Shown here piece by piece: positions 1,518 through 60,600 of a stretch of 64,000 nucleotides of DNA. The DNA comes from Magallana gigas (taxonomy: Eukaryota). Positions within the stretch are counted from its first letter, which is position 1, and each line of letters begins with the position of its first letter. Location: the NCBI RefSeq assembly GCF_963853765.1, contig NC_088862.1:3658001-3722000 (forward strand), in the 5' to 3' direction. The position numbers were made by a program, and so were the translations under genes. Below the pieces are notes generated by a model. It had not been told where the DNA came from and made no database searches. It was given only the letters and a program-made list of their open reading frames with translations.

Positions 1518-4500
1518 CTGCTGACGACCTCTGCTATTTTGGAGTGTTCCTCTGAGGGACTTTTCAATGCTTTCCTTCTGGTTGAGATGTTGTAAAACAA
1601 ATCCTCTACCTTGTAACAGAGATTAAAACATTTGTAAAATAATGGTGTGAAGCTAATGTGAACATTTAAACCAGGGTTTAAATTTTGCATTTAAAATCAT
1701 ATATAGGGTATAAAAAATAAAAGAACTCCTCCATAACTTGACAATGCTACACGTAATGAATTGCAGGGTTCACATCAAATACACAAAATAATTTGATAAA
1801 GAGCACAACTTGCAAAAAATCATCAGATAAAAACTTCCTACAAATATGCACATTTTTCCGTTCGTAAAAACTGTTCATTACTAAAATTCCAACTTCAAAA
1901 GGGCCAAAATTCCCAGAAAAATATTGAAATTGGAATTTCCTGGTAATATGCACATCTACAGATTGTGTCCAAAATACTTACAAAGTTTTACAAAATTTTG
2001 TGCAGCAGTTTAAGAGAAGATGCACTTACCAAAAAAAATGAATGAAAGGTCAAATATGTTAAACCTGTTGCAACTTTGTTGCAAGATATATAAATATATA
2101 AAGGCACTTATGTTGCTCATCCAGTCATGGTATGTAATTTACATGAAGAGGAAACCTTACATGAGGGGAAAATCAAGGTGTAAACTATATATAAAGGGGA
2201 ACAAGGTGTAAACTTTACATGAAGGGAAACAAGGTGTAAACTATAAATGAAGGGGAACAAGGTGTAAACTTTACATGAAGGGAAACAAGGTGTAAACTAT
2301 AAATGAAGGGGAACAAGGTGTAAACTTTAAATGAAAAGGACATCACAATGTTAATTTTACATAAAGGGGAATCAAAGTGAAGTAAAGTCTTAACACAAAA
2401 TGAAGTTGTAGATTATGGGGAAATCAAGGTGTAAACTTTACACCAGGGAATCATGGTGTAATGGGAAATCAAATAAAGTTTTCAAACAACTATGCTATAA
2501 TAAGTGTTTTCAATACAAAGAGGTCATGCAACATGAAAAATTTATACATGAACTAGATATCTGTGAGCCAATGCTCACTAGTGATACCCCTGCTCTGATG
2601 TAAATATACAAAATATGCAAAGTTGTCATTTAACAGGAAGTTGACATCAGAGAGGCACAAAATGGATCTCACCTTATGGCTTGCCTAAACAAAGAGTGTG
2701 TTGAAATTTCATGCGCCAAGAAAAATATGAGTGATAGATATATGGTGGTGCTATATATACTACTGATGTCACATGATTTGAATCCTTTGAAGAGCGAGCC
2801 CGAGTATAATTAGTCAAGAATTATGCTATTGATACTCCGATATGCCGAAGGCTGTATGAAAAGAATGGATCTCACCATATGGCTTGCCTAAACAAAGAGT
2901 GTGTTGAAATTTCAAGCATCTGCAATCAACAGTTGCTGAGAAAAATTACACAGAAATTATGTTACAGACAGACACACAAGGGTAAAACAGTATATCCCTT
3001 CTCCTTCAAAGCAGGGGTAAAAAAACTAGGGCAAGCATACTGTAATTTGAGTTCCAACATTCCCTGCACATGGTTTTACTGGCTCTTTCACTTTACCATC
3101 CACATAACTTCCTCTGGAAAATACAATTAAAGCAAAATAAACAATTCAAACATGAAACAGACTATATATACTCTCATGAAAGTATAATTTACAAGTATAA
3201 TATTTTTCGAAAGTCGAACATCTCGAGGATTTCTATGTATTTTTAACAACCAAATCTTATTCTTATGCAAGGATATGTGTAAGGTAAAGAGAAATCATAT
3301 TTACTTAATAAACTGCATTAATCTCTATAGTATAACGTAGATAGTTTAAAAAGTCAATCATGTTTATGTTGAAAATACATAGAATATTGCCACAATGTAG
3401 CTGCTTATATAAAGAATTATTATACAAAGTATAGAATTGAAAGATAGACAATGACTTCAGTGACAAAAAAACTGACTTGAAAGCACATTTTGAATCAGTC
3501 GTTTTGGTTGTTATGGTGACATGTGCCACATGACTAATACTGGCCAATGCTTCGCCTCGAAATCCATATGTAGCGATAGAGTTCAAGTCCTCAAACTTCT
3601 GCAGTTTACTAGTGGTAAATCTTTCACAAACAATGTCCATATCTTCTTTCTGTAAATAAAATCATGGTGAAATAACCAAGAGGTGACAAACCAACAAGTG
3701 AACAACACATAACCAACCATGGAATGAAATACAATCTCTGTACAACAGAAACACATTTCAGCTTCTTTCATAAGAGATATCACAACAGTTCAACAAATTT
3801 GTAGTCAATGACCCCTAGTTAATGATTTCACTGTTAAAAGGCAATAGGTCATCAGTTGCAAGACCAATCCATTAGAAAACATCACTTTGAAGAGGAGAAT
3901 TCATTAAACTTTACAGAAGTAAAAAATAAATGCTGTCCTCTCTTAAAGGTAAAATAAGAAGAATACTAAAAGAGAACTATCAAGACAAATACAACAGAGC
4001 AGATGATCATCAATAACAAAAAAAATAAAATATTTCTCATAATTTTGTTACTAATTTTAGTTTCATTTGGCCTTATCAATGTTTATTTTTAGAATCACTT
4101 GACCTGATAACTGTGGGTATTTTTAGCATCACTTGACCGGTTATTGTGTCTATTTAAAGTAACACTCACCCTGATCCCTGTGCCGTTATCCTGAATCTGT
4201 AGCAGTTTCAGGCCACCTTGTTTGACAGTGACCTGAATGTTAGAGGACTTGGCATCCAAACTATTAACATAAAATTGTATGTTATATCTTATTACCTTAA
4301 GGTACTTGATATGTATTATAAACCTTATAACAAACTTTTAAAGTGGGTTTCTCTTTAAATATTACGACTCTAAAAAGGAGTCTTAACAAAGAATTCCTTG
4401 GATGGTGCCACAGAGAGTTTGGCATTTAGTAATCAAAAAGAAAAACCAAACTGAGAGGCCTGCAGCACAATCGCTCACAAGCACTTGCCAAAACTGGTTT

Positions 4501-43901: not shown

Positions 43902-44004
43902 TTAAAACTTGCAATGGAGGTGAATGTAGCTGTCACACAGTAACTTTTTCAAAGGTTAAAGATTCATTTAGAGTATTTTTTGTGTACCGTTCAGAGTATT
44001 CAAG

Positions 44005-44078
<74 letters not shown>

Positions 44079-45867
44079 TTGACATTTGGATTTGGCATGG
44101 TGGTTATTTTGAATCATTTTATTATGTAATCCTTGTCTGTTTTCTATGGAGAGATCCCAGAAACACTCTTGAGGATCTAAAAGGGAGAATTGTTAATGAG
44201 GAAGTAAAGTGATTGAATTGCATCATTTGTATTTTAGCAGTTTATTTACTGTTATACTGGCAGATAATTTCCTCACACTGTGCTTCATAACACTGATTGT
44301 CTGACATTCAAAAAGTGGTCTTTTAAAGTCACGGGTAAAGTAAAAATGTCAAGGTCATTCTGTAAATTAGGATGAAGGTCACTTTCAGGTAAAACTTATA
44401 GAAAATTCAAGGTCACTTAGATGTTTACAGAAAGATGTAGATTTGATTTAATGTCTCACTCATATCCATGACTTAACCTGTGCAAAGTTTCTCTTGTCAG
44501 TGACCTTATTTTATTAATTAATAATGAACATTATAAAAAAAAAATCACATTGGAAATGGGATTGTCTAATCATTATTTTCTTGCTCTATAATGGGTAGGC
44601 ATCCACTAAAAGTCAAGTGGAAGTTTTGAAGAAAAAAAAAATTGTAAAAAGAAAATTAGATATATTTACTTCAATGAAAAACACGTGTGGAATCTGAAGT
44701 AAAGGAAGAATAACAGACAGACAGTCATGTAGACTTGAAATATTGTTTACATTAAAAGAGAGAATAAAAGGCCAAAAAAAAAAGTTTGAGAATAGTTGTT
44801 GGTGTATGGAGCTTGTGTTTTAATTGATTCGATTAGTAAGCCTCTGTACAGCTGGGGAACTCTCGGAGCTGTAACAGTGAATTCTGGGAGGAAACGATCA
44901 GAATAGGAGCGCTGCTATTTACCTTCAAGAATGAGTCGAACAGAAGTTTTTCAATGTGTGTGTGGTTTTATAACCTGGTGCATCTAAAGATTGGATGATT
45001 TTGTGCAGTTCCCTATGTTGTTAAACTAAGTGTTTTTTTACATCTCATTCTGAATACCAGAAATGGATTTTACCTTCAGGTTTAGGATCAAGAAATGGAT
45101 TATTTATTTGTGAGTATTGTGCTTTTAACTTGAAAAGGAAAAAAATCAATGTTGAATTCTTTTTCAAAAAAGCGCACCATTTTTGTCGAGCTCTCTCTCC
45201 CTCTCTTTGACAATGCGCAACTGGAAGATACTTTTGGTCTGAAGCGTATTGATCCAGATTTCTGGTACTGATATCCTTGTACGGAAATAATGCCATTTCT
45301 GTTTAACCTGCAACTGTTCACCAGCGGTGAGAAACGCAGTAAACTGCTGCACGCTGCTGCACGCTGCACCTGATGATATGCACTTTCGCAGTAGCCATGT
45401 AATGGACTCACCTCCCCACTTTTCAAACAACCCCACTCTCTCTATGAACAGTGAAGCCCCAATTGATGTGACCTAGCCCTAACTAAATCTACAGAGATAT
45501 AATCATTTCATGTGGGTTAAAATCAGATTGTTCGGAGACACGGTGTATATTTTAAGTGTCTTTTGACGACTCTGATAAGATGTCATTATTTTAATGTGTG
45601 TGAATGCGTCCTTGAAGTCTGTCGCTGCAGCAGGGAAACATATTACATGTTGTTATGTTATTTACTTCTTCGACTCTCTGTTGCTGAAAAAATGGATGTC
45701 CTTAATGACCTGGTAATTTTTGTTCTGTTACGCATCTACCGTATGTAGTTTATGTTTGGATTATTTAAAGTTCCCATACGTTACCTCTGTGTGAAGTTGG
45801 TTAATTGAAATTGTCTTTCTTTTAGCCTTGATTTTTTCATTTTGGATAATGGGGATATATACGATTG

Positions 45868-47766: not shown

Positions 47767-47824
<58 letters not shown>

Positions 47825-49354
47825 CACCATACGGGTTTGCTTTGTTGTAATGAATAACATTCTTATACTTGAAGTAGCAAATGAACTTAAAACAAAGTCG
47901 GAAAGTCGGAAGCACATGATTTAATTACTTCCATTGCGTGAGGCAAGGCTCATCCAGAGACTCTTAATACCTATCTTTTTCTTCTTTATTTCTTCTCAAG
48001 TTAGGAGGAAAAAAATTGCAGCTTTTAAAAAGCAATCATATTAAGTAGTGATGTTCTTTTTTTTTTTTCTTCACTGCTGTTTTTAGCATCAATGGAAAAT
48101 AAGGCAGCTTCATTTTCTATGGATCTGGAGACTTGTAGTAGCCATTATAAGGTTGTTGTCAACTTTTCACAGACCCAAGTTCTTTCTTCCACATGGCCCC
48201 AATCCACTTGTGTCTTGTCTTCTGTATTTTTATTTCTCACTCTCCTTTACTTTTACAAATAATGTTTTTCCTATAAAAACATTGATTAAAATTGAAAAGA
48301 AATTTGAAATGCATGCACAACTATTGGTCTTGAAGGTAAAAAAAATAATTACCTTATTGTTAATTATGAGCTGCAGTCCCGTTTTTATGCAGAAAACAAT
48401 TAAAATAGAATGGAGCAATGGAGCAAGTGTTTCTAACCAGACCAAGGTTATTTTTGATATATTTATGATAAGAGAAAGAGATTAACTTAAGCTGTTTGGG
48501 AGATAGGAAAGAAATAACCTTCTAGATGAAGAATACACAGGAATTGTGATTGATTTAGAACCAATTATAGAGTTGGCAAAGTGTAGAGTGGGACGTGTGA
48601 GAGGGCTGNNNNNNNNNNNNNNNNNNNNNNNNNNNNNNNNNNNNNNNNNNNNNNNNNNNNNNNNNNNNNNNNNNNNNNNNNNNNNNNNNNNNNNNNNNNN
48701 NNNNNNNNNNNNNNNNNNNNNNNNNNNNNNNNNNNNNNNNNAGACAGACAAGAGAAAGAGCACACAGAAAAGTGAGAGAAGACATACAGAGAGATGGACT
48801 GACTACAAAATGGACAGACAAAGGATAATAGACATGGATACTTGATGCAGGGAGAATTGTTCATGAAATGCTGTGGGATTATATGAAGTTCCATTATTAT
48901 TGCAAGGTGTAGGTTTAAGGAATAGGAGGAACTGACAGGAAAGTGAATCAATAGCTGCTAGAACATTAAGTCTGCCTTTTACTACAATTGACATGCAAGC
49001 TCTGGTTAAATGTTCTTTGGGAATTGCACACAATAAAATGGCATGTCCTAGTGTGAATCCTTATGGTTTCGTACAAGAAGTCACCAGAGTATCTCATGAC
49101 AAGGGCCCAGAAATCCTTTGGCTTGGTGGAGCAGCCACAATGAAAGATTTTTGTCGTGACTTGATTCACCTTCCTCTGTCTGTCTGGATTCCACCCAACC
49201 CCTTCATCTTATTCAATGTGTCACTTTTCAAAGAGACTGTTTGTCTGTCTGTGTATTGGAGATGTATATCTAAAGCTGCTCATTATCAGACTGATGACCT
49301 GCCGCCTCACTTTTCAAAAAGACTTTATCTATATGTCTGTCTGTGTATTGGAGA

Positions 49355-49444
<90 letters not shown>

Positions 49445-50178
49445 GTCCTGACACTAACACATTGATTTTCAGTCAATAGAGTCTCTCTCACTCTCAGACA
49501 ATGGGTTGCATATTTTCAAGACATTTGTTGCATGTTTATGGGGAAAGAAATTTCATTCACAATCAATATTTGCACACAGTCAAGTCATCCACAGCATTGT
49601 TAGAAACCTGTTTCGCTGTAATTGTCATAGCTTTTCAAGTGCAGGTTTTAAAACTATCAGACGTAATTTCCTACCAGGAGTCGAAGCTCTAAATGGCTTG
49701 GTGCTTTTAGATAGCGTTCCTTTACAGACAATGCCTAATGGTTAAGCTCTCTCATTACACCTCCATTTCCCACACCTTTTCCTTGACAAATTCTCTAATT
49801 ATTGATATGAAAAATTTTTTTTGTTGGTTTATGGTTTGTTTTTTTTTTTTAGTTTTCTTGGTAAGTGGAGAGTTCACAAATGTGCATACACAGAATCTCT
49901 CATCTTCTGAATCCTTATTTCTGACGTTGATCTTCTTTTAAAGTTGTCATGTTTATTGAACTTGTCATTGTTGAATAACTGTTCTTCAAAATAGTTCTGA
50001 ATATAAATAACAAGTTGTTATATGGTGGAGTTGTAAAGAGAGTGCTCATGTTTCTTTTTGTTGTAGATTTGTTATACAGACTAAAGAAATTTTGTTTTGT
50101 TGTAGATGTATTTTATAGTTTATTAGAGAAACCTCATATAAATTTATACCTTGTTGTTTCGTTGTAGAGCTGCACAGC

Positions 50179-53100: not shown

Positions 53101-53341
53101 TTAATGCAATGAAAGGCTTAAACATTGAAGTATTTAGATTTGATGCAGGTATTTTTTTTTTTAAAATTTATGATATTTGTCTTATTTGAGCTTCTTTTTC
53201 GTTGAACAGCTGAGCTTGGCGATTATAACCCTGATGAACACAAAGGCAACTACATCTCAGACTATAGGTTCATCCCTCACCAAACCGAGGACTTCGAGAA
53301 GCAGGTCTCAGAACTTCACAAACAGCATAGGTCAGTGTGTG

Positions 53342-53394
<53 letters not shown>

Positions 53395-56300
53395 AAAATG
53401 TAAGACACCAATGGGAGACTGAGATAGAATTTTAGTATAGACATCAGATTTGTTTGAATTCCGGACATTTCAGTTAGGACCTAAGACTCTATTTAAAACA
53501 TCCAAGTTGTTCACCAAAACAGTTTTACCAAACTGTATGACTGTTTTGCTGCCTCAACTTGCTAATTAACAATATTGTGTCTCTGTGTTTGGTTTTGTGG
53601 CATTTTATGTGTAATTTTATAACACTCTGTTTACAGAGGGCAGACTCCTGCTGATGCGGAGTACCATTATCTGGATAAAGCCAAGAGACTGGAGATGTAC
53701 GGAGTGGATCTCCATAATGCTAGGGTAAGGGCAGCAACTCCAGACAAACAAAAATTAAAGTTCCAATGCACAAAGCTAAAAATCTGACCGTACACTCTAA
53801 AACCTGATGAAACCTTTTGGACAGGCCATTATAGCTCTTTCAGTATAGACTTTGGAATTCATGCACTTTTATTTACTTGCTGTTTTTTTTTTTAGATAAT
53901 TTTTTTTTCATTTCTCTGTTCAGCTTTAAAAGGGGGTGGGGTAGATGGTAGTAGTATAAACCTATGAGGATGGATTTCTACAAAAATTATTTACAGGGAA
54001 AGTTATTGATACACTGTTTAAGGTTAAATAATAAGGTCACTTCCTTTACAAGGATTTTATTTATTTTTCATTGACTTTTTCTGGACATTGGTCAGTGACA
54101 CCGTGATGTTTCTGTTGTCAGTGATGTGTGATGTTTTTTTGCTAGGTGTTGATTGATCGGGAGATCCCCATAAACTCCCCGTTCTATGTAAGTTTTGGAC
54201 ACACACTCTAATAGGGTGCTGCTAATACCAGGAGAAAAACCTGGGTTTGAACATGCACACTCATAGGGTGCCGCTAATGCCAGGAAAATATTCCTGGGTT
54301 TGGCTTTTCTTTGCATCTTTGACATCATGGTTTTGATATTTGACATGTGTGTTAAAAATTAAATAAAAAAGAAAAATAATTATTTAAAATTTCTGAAATG
54401 TGATGTTGAGAATTTTTTTTCTTCATAACTTTTTTTCTTACCAGTGAAATTACTTGGAAAAGTTTAATTTTGATTTGGAATGTGAACTATTTGATGTTGT
54501 TAATTCTTGTTTTTTCAGTTTTTGAATTGAAATATCTTTTGGAGATGTGTAATTTAACATATTTAACAATGAATGATTTATTGTCTGAAAAATCTTCTGC
54601 ATTTTGAAGCCAGAATCTTCAGCTCAAACAACTATATTTTTTTTTCTTCATCTCAACCAATAACACCAGCAACGTCTACAAATACGAACCCATGGAATGA
54701 AAACATATATTTATATCTCAAAAAAGCTTATTTGCCTGCCTGAAAGCTTAATGTAGATTTTAATTACTTAAAAAATACCGGTAATTGTATGCTTTTGATT
54801 TTTATTTCAAAGAAATTGCACAAAGATCTTTAATTAAAACATGGCGGCCAACCTTTTGGTTTTTACAGGAAAATGAATTTCTTATTTAGAGGGGAACTGA
54901 TTTTTTTGAAATCTTTTTGAAATCTTTGACCCCCTGACCTGTATCTTTGTAGGGCATGTTTATTGATGCCAATGAATTGGGACAGTGCAATACAGGAGTT
55001 AGTATGATTTCTATCTCGTTAACGCTATAAGTCAATAACGACTTAATTATCTTTAGATAACACTGGTAGAGGGATACGTTTTCTCATCAGCAGTTGATCA
55101 TTTGCATTAACCTGTATCTCATATATAACCAATCACAAAGCACAATACATCCAACAGAATGGGTTTGAATTTTAAAGCAGCCTTATGATTTGTTAAGATT
55201 TTATACCTTGATTTTTTTTTTTTTTTTTTTTATAAATATTCATGTCATTTAATTAAAATTTCTTTTGTAAGATCTTAGTTTCTTTCATACATAATATGAC
55301 ATCTAAATGCAGATTTTATTTAAAATGTTTACATTTAAGAACAGAGAGGTCTTAATGAGTCTTTATATTTATAATCTGCTTCAAGAAAATATTTGCGCAT
55401 AGAGTTGTTGTCCCCTGAAATAATCTTCAATGTGAGTGAAACTTTATGAGAAAATGAAAAAACTTTATGATGACATGCTCATTCAAAATGTTTTCTTAAT
55501 TTTATACCCTATGTGTTAGATCAGCATTATACCCTTAATGTTAGATCAGCTGATGGGGAATTTATTCACATAATGGAGACAAAAGAGAATAAATATTTTA
55601 TGTATAATAGTTTTCAAGTGAAGAAAGTTGAGCATAAAATGTTTAACGATTCAATAATTATGTTTATTCATGACTGTATACAAATAATTGTATACAATAA
55701 CATGGAATGCTGCATGTATCCCACATGTTGGATTGCATTACCCTATTTTTTTTTTTGTCCCTGAAAGTTTCTGACATAATTTCAGGTTTTTTGTTTTTCA
55801 ATATACTATAATAATATATCTACTGACTAGGAATGGTTGTTTTGTAATTATTGATATTTTTAAGACTATATGCCTTGAGATCTATTAAGCAATTTTGATT
55901 AAAAAAAATAACATATACACACATTAGAATTTCCATGGTGATTGCCCTGTAGTAAATTATCTCCCTTTGAGTTCTAGTGACTAACCTTAAAAATTCTTAC
56001 ACACTACTAACATTTTACTTTTTTGGTTTAATCAAAAGCAAATATTATGATGCAATTAATTATAAAATTTTATAGTATTAAGAATATCGGTATAAAGAAT
56101 ACTTGTAAACATTGTTTTCTCTAAAAAAAAAAAAAAAAAAATTATTATAATATTAAGTTTTTTATATTTATATTTAAAACTCTAGACGACTTTCACATTG
56201 TTAGTTTCCTCCCTTTGTCAGCATATTTGATGTATTTTTTTTTATCTGTTAACGTCTAAATATAACTATGTTTTCTTTTATTGTGAAAAATAAACATTGA

Positions 56301-57580
56301 ATATTTATTCCCTAGAGTTGTGTACAGAATGGAAGCAGGAACTTGTATGAACTGCATCCACAAAAGGAATTAACTTGATGTGAAAGTTGTCTATTTTTAG
56401 AAATAAAAATATATTCATTTTCATAATCAAGTCGTTTATCTCTATTTTATTACTTAATGCAAGATTTTTTTTTTAAAAATTTAAAAAAAGAAAAAATTGA
56501 ATGATAGTTGAATACTACTGACTGCAGAGTGCATAGCAGGAGTCTTTGTCAGTTTTAATGAGCAGTTCATGACTCGGGAGTTTTAACCAACCTTTTTCTC
56601 CTGTAGGATCAGAGCAACATAGACATACAGCTAGGCGTGACGTCGGTCGGGCTGGTGGTCTTTCAGAATAATGTCAAAATCAATACATTCCCATGGTGAG
56701 TAATAGCAGTGTGTTTGAAGAGAATTCTCGCATTTAAATATTAAAAGTTGTGTACATTAAAGAAAGGGGTTTTAATTTCTCTTTATAAGAAGTTAATAAA
56801 TAAGACCCCAAAAAGCCATTAAATCAAGTAAATTTTGTATTATATAAGATAAAACATTTCCTAATGATTTTTTTTTCAGATGTTATTTAAAACAACCTTA
56901 ATTTTGCCAAAATTTTTCAGGGCAAAGATTGTCAAGATATCATTTAAAAGAAAACAGTTTTTCATTCAACTTCGAAGGGAGATGGTAAGTTGACACTAAT
57001 TTGAATGATTTGACAACTTGTCAAAAATGCATAGAATTTCACATAGTATATTTTTTCATATTAACAATTCAAACCTATCTTGTACATAAAAATAAAAGTT
57101 TGACCTTACTGTGATGTTCTTTATTATTTTGATTTGGTCACAGAAATGTTTGCTTTTATGACCAACACGCCTTGACATCAAAGAATCTTGGAGATAACAT
57201 TTAGTCAATGAAACTTTTTGAAGCAATGTAGATTTGTATGGTTACAGAATGACTCGGTGGAGAACCTGATCGGCTTCAACATGGTGAGCTACAGGTCGTG
57301 TAAGAATCTCTGGAAGTCCTGTGTGGAACATCACACGTTTTTCCGCCTCTACGTCCCGAACCCTCCGTCAAAGAAAATCTTCTCCATGGGATCCAAGTTC
57401 CGCTACAGGTGAGTGGGCGGCACAGACAGGTTAATCATATACCTGGCCAGGTGTTATATACCCAGGTGATGCTGTGTTGTGTGTATTAGCTGAGGAGTAG
57501 ACCATCAAGTGTAGAGGAACGATAGTTGTAACTGAGATGACAGGTATATTATTACTTATTAGGTTAGTTACTGACACACT

Positions 57581-57616
<36 letters not shown>

Positions 57617-57631
57617 TGAGGCGAAGCCGAA

Positions 57632-57667
<36 letters not shown>

Positions 57668-60600
57668 AGTGTGTCAGTAACTAACCTATTAAGTGTTTTG
57701 TTTTCCCAAGGACTATCTAGTGATACATTTACTGATTTTACTCCCAAGAAGTGTTGATCACACAATTAAATTCCACACATTTTTATTTTTTCAACAGTAA
57801 ATAAAGTTCAACAATCTTTATATCAGTAACAAACAGTTTTTCAACAATAAAATATTTTAAACATTTAATAATAAACAATTAAAACCACTCCAATCTCTGC
57901 ATTTTTTTCTGAACTATTTTGTGTTAACGTTGATGTTACCGATATTCACGGTGCAGTTACTGAAGCATATTGGTCTGAATGGTCGTTTCTCTTCAACTGG
58001 ACTCTGCGTTTCAAAATCTGCGAAAAGTTGATCAATTTGCCACCCATTAAGATCGCATTCCACTATTTGAGTTTCACAAACCGTTGATGAAGATGATGAA
58101 TTAGCCATAATAGCATGCCTCTTGGTACTTGGTAACATTGGCAAGCTGGATGTTGGTGCAAGATTTTCGCTGATAGACTCACCCATCTGAATTTTTTCTG
58201 CATCACTAACTCGCTGATAGACACTCAGACTCTGTACGGACTTGTGTCCAGTGACAGACATTACTTGTGAGGGTCCATACATACACTTGGACAGAATGGA
58301 TGCTCCAGTTGCTCTTATGGAATGGTTTGTATATACTTTTGACAAGTTAGTAGCCTTGCTCAAGGAGCTGAGAAAACTCCTCAATTTCTTTTCACCAACA
58401 GGGACATTACAGAACCACACTGCATCAGATTCGAGAAAACTCTCTTTTGGTCGCTGCCATAGCCTGTAAAAGGGAACATTTCTAACTCAAAACAAGATAC
58501 ACATAAATTTTCAGTCATAAAAATTTATATATTTTGTGTCAATCAAAATTACCTGTCACATTCTGGATGGAGCTTTGATAAGTACATCTCGAAGGACAAA
58601 ACTGGACAGTAGATTGATCCTACCAATAAAGATAACAAATACATATAAGTATTGATAGATTTTTAAATAAAAATTTATAAGTATGATAAGATTTTCTCTA
58701 TGACTCAATTCTTTTAAAAAATACAGTAGACACAGTGAAAAGCAAAACAAACCTTTAATTTCTGGCATAATTCCAGAAGAAGTTTCTTTGTCCAAACGAT
58801 GGTTTTTAGTTAATTCATCAACGACTTTTTTCACGACTTTTCGACCAGTGTCCTCGTCAGTTTCAACTCGGAACATATTTTTGGTCATGTTATGCATGTT
58901 TTCATTCCCCCGCCTGCAGAAAAACATTCGGATGTCAAACTGCACTTTATTGAAGAGACCCTGTGGTGTATTGATAGACAGATGCATACTTGTATACAGC
59001 GATTTCAAGTCGGTGTCTGAGATAATAGGATGGTGAACCACGTCTCCCTTCCCCATTCTTTTGGCTTCGGCTAAAACAGCCTTAAAACAAGTGTTGCTAT
59101 CGGTAAACGAGGAATCCTTCACTATATCCACTTTTCTGTTGAAGGGGGGTGACTTCAAATATCTGTTTATGCCATGGCGAATTGTCTCCAGGGAATTTAC
59201 TTTGTAATGTGACCCATCTTCTCTACGTAGATCCATGTAGAAATGGCCTAGCATCTCGTCTAATTTCACGTTGTCAAAGTCTTGAAAGTTCTCATTTTCG
59301 CCTTTTACTTTCAAGTATTCCTTAAAAACTTTAGCCGCTCCTTTGTTTACCTGTAAAGTTTTGCTACTGTTCAATTTTAATCGCTTTTCCTGTTTTTCCT
59401 CTGCAGTGCTTAGCACAAATCTGGATGCCATTCTACACGAACGCAGCAGACACAACAATATGTGACGTCAATTCAAAGGGCAACTACTCTAATTTTAAAA
59501 AAATTCCAAAGGGCAACAACTCAAAATATATTAAGAACTTACGGAACACGGTTTCTGTATCAAATAATATGAAATGTTGAGATGAGTAGGCGAAGCGGCG
59601 GCCAATGACGGCCATATTGCCTACTATTAATCCTCACGGAGCCTACATAGAGATATATGAGGCAATCACGTGCCATGTTTAAACCAATGAAAATGTGACA
59701 TTTCAGTCCGAGGGAAAACAATGTTATTTATAGGATTTTTGATTTTTAAGATACAAGTATTGTCAAAATATATTGCCTTTGAAAATTAATAAATCGCAAC
59801 CATTTAAATGCAACCTTTAAATGTTGATATTTCCGATTGTCAATTAAAAATTCCAAGATCATGCAGAACAATATGCTAAGGTATGATTGCAATAATAATC
59901 ACAAAAAAAAATATAAGTTTTGAAATGCAAGTAAGTACCCAGGTGAATATTAATTAAGGAAATAAATTCTTCTTGCTTATGTACCGGTAGTGTAAATTAC
60001 CCCAATAGGACAGAGATTTCCATTTTTACAGTATTATTGAACTGAAAAGAGTATTAAATGGAGAGCTAGAAAAAATTGTTTTGTAGAAATAAATGATTAG
60101 GATTAATAAAAGAAATTATTTTAGGAAATAATGTATAATTAAGTCATTCATATTAAATTTAGAAATATTTTGCATTCAGCGTAGTGTTGTCAGATAAGAG
60201 TTATTTTCCTTTACCCACAAAATATTCACATGCAGCATATTATGCATGTACATGGATCAACATCTATGGTTAGATTGTACTCCATTGATATGAGATATTC
60301 CAACCACACCTCATCACCAAATTGTTTGATTTTGTAGCGTTCATAATGCATGGTGTGTTCTGTCTCAAATTTTCTCAGCATTATCACGGTTTGTGGTTTT
60401 TTTCCCCCCCACTCTAACGATTGGTGACCAGAACCTTTCAGGAAAACCCCCACCCCCCTCCCTTTTGATCTCATTATTAACATGAACACATTCATTCACT
60501 CACAAGGGTTACATATGTCTCTTGAGTGAGCAATTTGTTTTGCCCATCATCCATTTTGTGTGACGGAGATATTTCTAATCGCACGTGAGCACAAATTTTC

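Follow-up and report, generated by a model that had tools for sequence, protein, structure and literature searches.

A probable young autonomous Crypton transposon with a conserved palindrome beside its joining point in a FERM-PTP gene intron of the oyster Magallana gigas

What kind of genetic unit is the three-exon tyrosine recombinase gene that lies within an intron of another gene in the oyster Magallana gigas, and is it still able to move? We addressed this question in a window of 64,000 nucleotides (contig NC_088862.1 of assembly GCF_963853765.1, positions 3,658,001 to 3,722,000 of the forward strand); positions given below are those of the window unless a contig is named. A preliminary description made from the letters of this window had proposed an apparently intact, spliced Crypton, i.e. 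a DNA transposon encoding a tyrosine recombinase, at 57556-59728 in an intron of PTPN4. We consider it highly probable that the locus harbours a young, autonomous Crypton-class DNA transposon which is related to DUF3504 proteins (CryptonA-like) and is inserted antisense into an intron of a gene combining a FERM domain with a protein tyrosine phosphatase (FERM-PTP, PTPN3/4-like), and this judgement includes the mechanism proposed below. The observations which the preliminary description had named as speaking against a transposon (a single-copy conserved locus, lack of splicing, lack of similarity to tyrosine recombinases or DUF3504) were each looked for directly or by approximation, and all outcomes favoured a young autonomous Crypton.

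The ends of the unit were defined by an empty site. Public read runs matching this stretch are labelled oyster. A contig of DNA run X14 joins position 57549 straight to 59722 with one ambiguous nucleotide, and the same joint is found in a contig of run X18, in which the left flank is slightly different; the empty site was thus detected in two other oyster data sets. Because these contigs join 57549 to 59722, the transposon comprises positions 57550-59721 on the minus strand (2172 bp), with a sense strand that begins with TTGTTTTCCC and finishes with AAGTAATA. The genome searched comprises 564 Mb in 29 contigs, and the similarity among all other copies stops at these two points. The ends proposed previously, 57556 and 59728, are consequently 6-7 nt off. 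There is no target-site duplication, and the empty-site joint shares at most one base. Short TTATT direct repeats had been described at the ends; both words exist, at 57556-57560 within the element and at 59724-59728 in the flank. We rejected them as a target-site duplication since they are out of register with the ends given by the empty site. In register, the 5' flank ATAAATAACA (sense strand; 59722-59731, minus) and the last ten bases of the element, ATAAGTAATA, are identical at eight of ten positions. This flank carries ATA at -10 to -8, which is typical of insertion sites of the family, and the 3' flank ATAT (57546-57549, minus) is still present in the empty allele. No long terminal repeats are found in the unit, which departs from the description of Cryptons by a subterminal palindrome and a 17-nt inverted repeat.

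The recombinase is the sole gene of the 2172-bp unit; neither a reverse transcriptase nor a DDE transposase nor another long open reading frame (ORF) was found in it. Joining three exons of the minus strand (59431-58753, 58619-58553 and 58463-57914; 679 + 67 + 550 = 1296 nt) yields the predicted frame of 431 codons plus stop, which extends from the ATG at 59431 to the stop codon at 57916-57914 and is free of internal stops. Exon 1 (58753-59431) encodes amino acids 1-226 plus one nucleotide and comprises the N-terminal QRICH1-like domain and the start of the catalytic domain with R174 and K209. Exon 2 (58553-58619, 67 nt) is colinear with intact homologues over both junctions, and exon 3 (57914-58463, including the stop) contains H296-x-x-R299, H322, Y331 and a conserved C-terminal FSNCTV motif. 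Intron 1 (58620-58752, 133 nt) and intron 2 (58464-58552, 89 nt) on the minus strand are canonical as described earlier, with GT at 58752 and 58552 and the frame resuming after AG at 58619 and 58463. In a plain ORF list the gene appears as two unrelated ORFs of 300 and 168 amino acids, just as the preliminary description had noticed. The set of R-K-HxxR-H-Y motifs was recovered in full: RRGNEN (R174), LTKNH (K209), NHSIR (H296, R299), TGHKS (H322) and SVYQR (Y331). In the alignment of homologues all six catalytic residues fall in nearly invariant columns; R174 and K209 were assigned by motif (RxxE and TK) and conservation, not from a structure of the oyster protein.

Kinship with tyrosine recombinases and DUF3504 proteins was evident from several searches. 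Exon 3 matched the Pfam family Phage_integrase (PF00589) with 27.9 bits at a cut-off of 27.1, and exon 1 resembled the Pfam QRICH1 domain with a score under the cut-off. A search with exon 1 retrieved 77 homologues, mainly from bivalves (Pinctada, Mytilus, Ostrea, Mizuhopecten, Mercenaria); among the others were a gastropod and a brittle star. PF12012 (DUF3504) and PF00589 occur together in many homologues of full length (about 350-520 amino acids). The spliced oyster protein aligns with the homologues without gaps at both exon junctions, which supports the intron model. Names given to these homologues in the source databases (KIAA1958-like, KCTD1_15, ZMYM2-like/QRICH1 C-terminal domain) bear out the concern that annotation could mislabel the element as a host gene. 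Against PDB, a profile of the family matched archaeal XerA in the section HxxR..H..Y; its match to human QRICH1 took in the N-terminal two thirds. The AlphaFold model of a Pinctada homologue with 63% identity (P0009) has predicted local distance difference test (pLDDT) values of mostly 75-95 in blocks within residues 11-320, with a dip near residue 215. This model superposes on Cre over about 355 columns (template modelling score 0.65 by target, E 2e-7) and also fits QRICH1 (9hjt, among the top matches of both sequence and fold), XerA, the Tn1549 integrase and lambda integrase. With the Pinctada protein as a proxy, a two-domain tyrosine recombinase fold like that of Cre is predicted for the oyster enzyme.

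We also assessed transcription and splicing in public RNA data, with reads matched at a likeness of at least 93%. Intron 1 is spliced out in RNA contigs of runs X17 and X18 (joint 58618/9-58752/3). Intron 2 is spliced out in the same two runs and in two raw reads of run X21 (joint 58462/3-58552/3), while DNA run X14 showed no skipping of either intron. Every read over the gene body in X21, a stranded poly(A) run, has its first mate on the plus strand. In most stranded libraries this means RNA from the minus strand, which is the strand of the element and antisense to the host gene. RNA depth over the element body was modest. One contig of X17 spans 57700-58228 and thereby the 3' untranslated region (57715-57913, minus). 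At the level of the family, the Crypton gives rise to RNA from its own strand, and this RNA is spliced at both introns.

Near-full copies number at least five (the present one and four others, 94-99% identical), and partial or older copies are also found in the genome. Divergence between the youngest copies is only about 1%. Three copies, the present one, L002 (C9) and L003 (C4), are intact: the ATG is present in each, as are the four splice sites and the complete frame. Synonymous exceed non-synonymous codon differences among them (4:1, 6:2 and 6:1), and their divergence is 0.46-0.69% in the coding part versus 1.15-2.19% in the rest. The reverse pattern is found in L004 (G000:C10:8596439-8598524), which shows 3 synonymous and 14 non-synonymous differences from the present copy (13-14 non-synonymous across comparisons), is interrupted by one in-frame stop (codon 240) and lacks an arm of the palindrome. 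L005 and L006 contain frameshifts. Judged from these comparisons, the copies show the pattern to be expected if new copies derive from functional masters and then decay. Two older copies, L007 and L009/L012 (G000:C1:51.63 and 51.72 Mb), are about 90% identical to the present copy; since their 5' flanks are nearly identical, they arose by regional duplication and not by separate insertions.

Besides the autonomous copies there are many short elements, in which similarity to the autonomous query is confined to about 190 nt at its start and about 500 nt at its end. With one mismatch allowed at most, the 26-nt 3' end was counted at least 735 times in the genome, versus 0 occurrences for the reversed control; most of these copies belong to non-autonomous derivatives of 690 bp. 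Among the complete short elements, which are non-autonomous and retain only the two ends, 690 bp is the modal length. An excess of read depth over the two ends was not counted as copy number. Head-to-tail dimers of the 690-bp derivative are located at L020 (G000:C9:24469633-24471023), with an exact end-to-end junction, and a second dimer locus lies about 114 kb away (G000:C9:24355778-24357169); the pair looks like a segmental duplication. The near-full copies, the hundreds of deletion derivatives and the empty site together support the earlier proposal of a young, autonomous Crypton.

These data have to be weighed against three other explanations. That L004, L005 and L006 are already broken, that RNA depth is modest and that no mobility event was seen directly would all fit a family which was recently active and is now dead or silenced, its frames being too young for decay and its RNA low-level or read-through. 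We regard this as improbable in view of the three copies that keep frame and splice sites with an excess of synonymous changes, the spliced transcripts from the element's strand antisense to the host, the divergence of only about 1% between the youngest copies and the absence of the insertion from two other oyster data sets. The Crypton family is very probably still able to move, or was so until very recently. DIRS/Ngaro retrotransposons and integrated DNA viruses encode tyrosine recombinases too, and the gene could come from a fragment of such an element; with a unit of 2172 bp that is fixed by the empty site and by sister copies and holds one gene and no reverse transcriptase, such an origin is very unlikely. 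A domesticated host gene of the DUF3504 group (KIAA1958/KCTD1/ZMYM/QRICH1-like), as the database names of the homologues and the presence of QRICH1 among the best PDB matches might suggest, is hardly conceivable for a multi-copy family with sharp common ends, an empty site, hundreds of non-autonomous derivatives with the same ends, a position antisense within the intron of another gene and a complete catalytic set, most of which is lost in domesticated DUF3504 proteins (PMC3212892).

The target of the family was analyzed in independent flanks of its insertions, 36 on the 5' side and 47 on the 3' side. Upstream of the element A is found at -10 in 26/36 flanks, T at -9 in 26/36, A at -8 in 34/36, T at -7 in 24/36 and T or A at -1 in 35/36. 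Downstream A occupies +1 in 37/47, T +2 in 45/47, A or G +3 in 46/47 and T or G +4 in 38/47. The preferred target is ATAT-N6-ATAK, and the element enters directly after the 6-base spacer. Core sites of tyrosine recombinases usually consist of two short half-sites flanking a spacer (PMC3212892), and the oyster target, with two short AT-rich half-sites and a 6-bp spacer, fits that usual layout. At the dimer junction in L020 AAGTAATA is followed immediately by TTGTTTTCCC, AATA abutting TTGTTTTCCC, so that the two ends are joined exactly. Written in the register of the target the joined ends read ATAA-GTAATA-TTGT; over the 36-47 sites only ATA (-10 to -8) and T, R, T/G (+2 to +4) are common to target and joined ends. 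A back-joint of 59717 to 57550 was seen in one DNA contig. We rejected it as a sign of a free circle because the assembly holds tandem dimers that could yield the joint.

The 3' part of the element has a conspicuous layout. On the sense strand an inverted copy of the 5' end, AGTCCTTGGGAAAACAA (57698-57714, minus), is followed by AAC, a palindrome of 141 nt (57554-57694, minus) and AATA (57550-57553, minus), the last four bases between palindrome and joining point, at which the element ends. The inner copy corresponds to the 5' terminal 17 nt, TTGTTTTCCCTCGGACT (59705-59721, minus), which are kept in autonomous and non-autonomous copies. The arms of the palindrome (57554-57622 and 57626-57694) are 69 nt each with 66/69 positions paired (96%), a 3-nt loop and the apex GGCTTCGCC (GCGAAGC on the other strand). 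A perfect terminal hairpin had been reported for this end; the hairpin is real, with three unpaired positions and a distance of 4 nt to the end of the element. Folding of the palindrome as single-stranded DNA gave -72.6 or -72.3 kcal/mol per strand, corresponding to a z of about -25 versus shuffled sequences. The same layout is present downstream of the homologous genes of pearl oyster (L031:8591-8731), where the inner copy and AAC are arranged alike, and of mussel (L032:6323-6461). The predicted 5' inverted repeat was not found at these Pinctada and Mytilus loci, the copies of which may be truncated. A palindrome of such kind is not mentioned in the cited Crypton literature.

We determined whether sequence or pairing is conserved using an alignment of seven versions of the palindrome from oyster, Pinctada and Mytilus, i.e. 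from three bivalve families. Paired cells amounted to 95.5%; 31 of the 68 pairs were altered on both sides and one-sided variation occurred in 3 pairs only. Such high values were reached in none of 500 shuffles, and a shift of the partner by 1-3 columns lowered the count to 2-4. The apex TCGGCTTCGCCTC, including a TC/TC mismatch, is almost invariant and has the identical orientation in all 17 oriented oyster copies. The compensated pairs and the invariant, uniformly oriented apex indicate that the pairing itself is maintained, at the level of DNA and with a fixed polarity. Rolling-hairpin replication was rejected as the reason for the palindrome, as 17/17 apexes face the same way and no flip/flop is seen. 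An RNA stem-loop is less likely, with 3 G-U-type cells as opposed to 49 double changes. Additional partial copies of palindrome arms were observed in the derivatives L021, L022 and L025, which points to instability of the palindrome.

What could such a structure do? Most likely the palindrome is a cis site at which the recombinase recognizes the ends and brings them together. Integron attC sites and the attP of CTX phage are folded-hairpin substrates of bacterial tyrosine recombinases, and by analogy the oyster palindrome might build its recombination site from folded DNA, either as a single-strand hairpin or as a cruciform. We regard this as a tentative and rather doubtful suggestion. It would be in line with pairing that is kept over sequence (31/68 pairs compensated, almost no G-T intermediates), with the invariant TC/TC mismatch and with the fixed orientation of the apex, which places GCGAAGC, a very stable DNA mini-hairpin, on one strand. 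At the base of the hairpin, furthermore, lies the inverted copy of the 5' end, with which that end can pair, and this pairing would bring both cleavage points together. If the suggestion is true, one strand exchange followed by replication would explain both the insertion free of duplication and the rise in copy number.

For the mechanism of the probable Crypton as a whole we propose that the recombinase would join the end AAGTAATA to the end TTGTTTTCCC, giving a circle or an equivalent joined form, and that the joined junction would then recombine with genomic ATAT-N6-ATAK sites as in the Goodwin model for Cryptons. The ends would be marked for the enzyme by a cis-acting site consisting of the palindrome, which stops 4 nt short of the joining point, and of the 17-nt inverted 5'-end copy just inside it.

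Several points weigh against the interpretation as a young, mobile Crypton. The empty-site contigs stem from runs whose labels name other organisms (B and C), and polymorphism within the species is therefore putative. Sister copies are 99% identical and reads cannot be assigned to one copy, so that expression is documented for the family only. Likeness at the crossover is weak (T at +2, a purine at +3 and ATA at -10 to -8) in comparison to the identity of 4-6 bp in fungal and algal Cryptons. Neither a transposition event nor an excision product nor a free circle was seen among assembly copies and public reads. The placement in CryptonA as opposed to another Crypton group is putative and based on sequence likeness. 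Finally, PF12012 gave no match when the exons were searched as separate pieces and not as the spliced protein. In homologues 58-63% identical over exon 1 the domain scores 36-41 bits (cut-off 29.7) over residues 142-288. It straddles both introns, which accounts for its silence on the exon pieces, and the missing match is therefore no evidence against kinship.

The region between the 5' terminal sequence and the ATG (59432-59704, minus) comprises the 5' untranslated and promoter region, where functions of motifs are putative. It holds two 24-nt direct repeats (59474-59497 and 59507-59530, minus) and after these, 32 nt upstream of the ATG, the perfect palindrome TGACGTCA (59463-59470, minus); repeats and palindrome may belong to the promoter of the transposon. 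The word GCTTCGC occurs a second time at 59590-59596 (minus; GCGAAGC on the plus strand), where it is part of an 18-nt stretch resembling the apex and descending arm of the large palindrome. A minority of the 690-bp derivatives lack this second word, which is retained in the others and in the autonomous copies.

The host gene lies on the plus strand. Plus-strand ORFs of the window contain FERM-type sequence, and the exon at 57212-57408 was recognized as FERM_C. With the splice donor GTGAGT at 57409 the element is located 141 bp into the host intron, in antisense orientation. Y_phosphatase exons follow on the same strand at C10:3757531-3758435, about 35 kb beyond the window. FERM exons and Y_phosphatase exons on one strand identify the host as a FERM-PTP gene of PTPN3/4 type. 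An intron of such a gene agrees with the preliminary description; PTPN4 in particular is an assumption from resemblance, the domain search having given FERM_C only. Elsewhere in the window, ORF pieces at 3308-4337 (minus) resemble exons of what we take to be a mismatch-repair gene of MutL/MLH1 type. Runs of N are found at 29959-30101, 33993-34141 and 48609-48741, and introns of the host contain (GA)n/(CT)n microsatellites at about 43950-44100, 47780-47850, 49350-49470 and 53340-53400.

The kind of element is not new, since CryptonA diversity has been mentioned for Crassostrea gigas (PMC13465315) and a 673-bp tandem repeat of this species, CgiSat40, is annotated as DNA/Crypton (PMC8268682); the family may well be catalogued in Repbase already. 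What is new here are the exact ends, the evidence for splicing and strand, the target preference, the size of the derivative family and the conserved palindrome by the joining point. Of all classes of eukaryotic DNA transposons, Cryptons are the one understood least, and direct activity has been reported in the cited literature only for Chlamydomonas (PMC9977147). A compact animal example with exact ends, an expressed gene, a target preference, mini-elements and a palindrome makes the mechanism testable in vitro. Mollusc gene models of this family carry names such as KIAA1958-, KCTD1- and ZMYM-like, which means that counts of "host" DUF3504 genes are inflated.

How does the oyster element compare to known systems? 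Cryptons have been described as transposons with a tyrosine recombinase only, short similarity between terminus and target and many non-autonomous derivatives, and animal Cryptons were reported to lack terminal repeats (PMC3212892). The medaka pair CryptonA-1_OL and CryptonA-1N1_OL (Kojima and Jurka 2011, PMC3212892) resembles the oyster family in having only a tyrosine recombinase related to DUF3504, no target-site duplication and few autonomous copies next to far more short derivatives made of the ends. The 17-nt inverted copy of the 5' end and the 141-nt palindrome distinguish the oyster element from these animal CryptonA elements. In Chlamydomonas, active Cryptons were observed to target a motif like their terminus (PMC9977147). 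The element concerned, CryptonF-1_cRei, was the first Crypton seen moving and shares with the oyster family insertion at sites resembling its ends, in oyster in part only, clean empty sites and a copy number above the expectation for pure cut-and-paste (PMC9977147). It belongs to another Crypton group and its terminus CACCG matches the target CAYCG, whereas the oyster target ATAT-N6-ATAK matches the joined ends in part only. The likeness of target and terminus in oyster is thus weaker than in fungal Cryptons (PMC3212892) and in the Chlamydomonas element (PMC9977147). The satellite CgiSat40 (PMC8268682) is similar in size to the 690-bp derivative with its head-to-tail dimers in L020, a comparison made by size, and the dimers may be related to it.

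Domesticated DUF3504 genes (KIAA1958, KCTD1, ZMYM2-4, QRICH1, WOC) belong to the same protein lineage as the oyster recombinase. They are single-copy and have mostly lost the residues for catalysis, whereas the oyster protein keeps R, K, H-x-x-R, H and Y within a mobile unit. With Cre, XerA/XerCD and the Tn1549 and lambda integrases (PF00589) it shares the predicted two-domain fold and the catalytic signature at 11-16% identity; in contrast to these the oyster gene is eukaryotic with introns, and its site is not 13-8-13 lox-like. Integron attC sites and CTX attP would differ in the position of the crossover, which in oyster lies just outside the perfect stem, and a folded substrate is suggested for oyster by analogy to them. 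By the same analogy the oyster site would be like attC and attP in its long imperfect palindrome with conserved pairing, fixed unpaired positions and an adjoining crossover.

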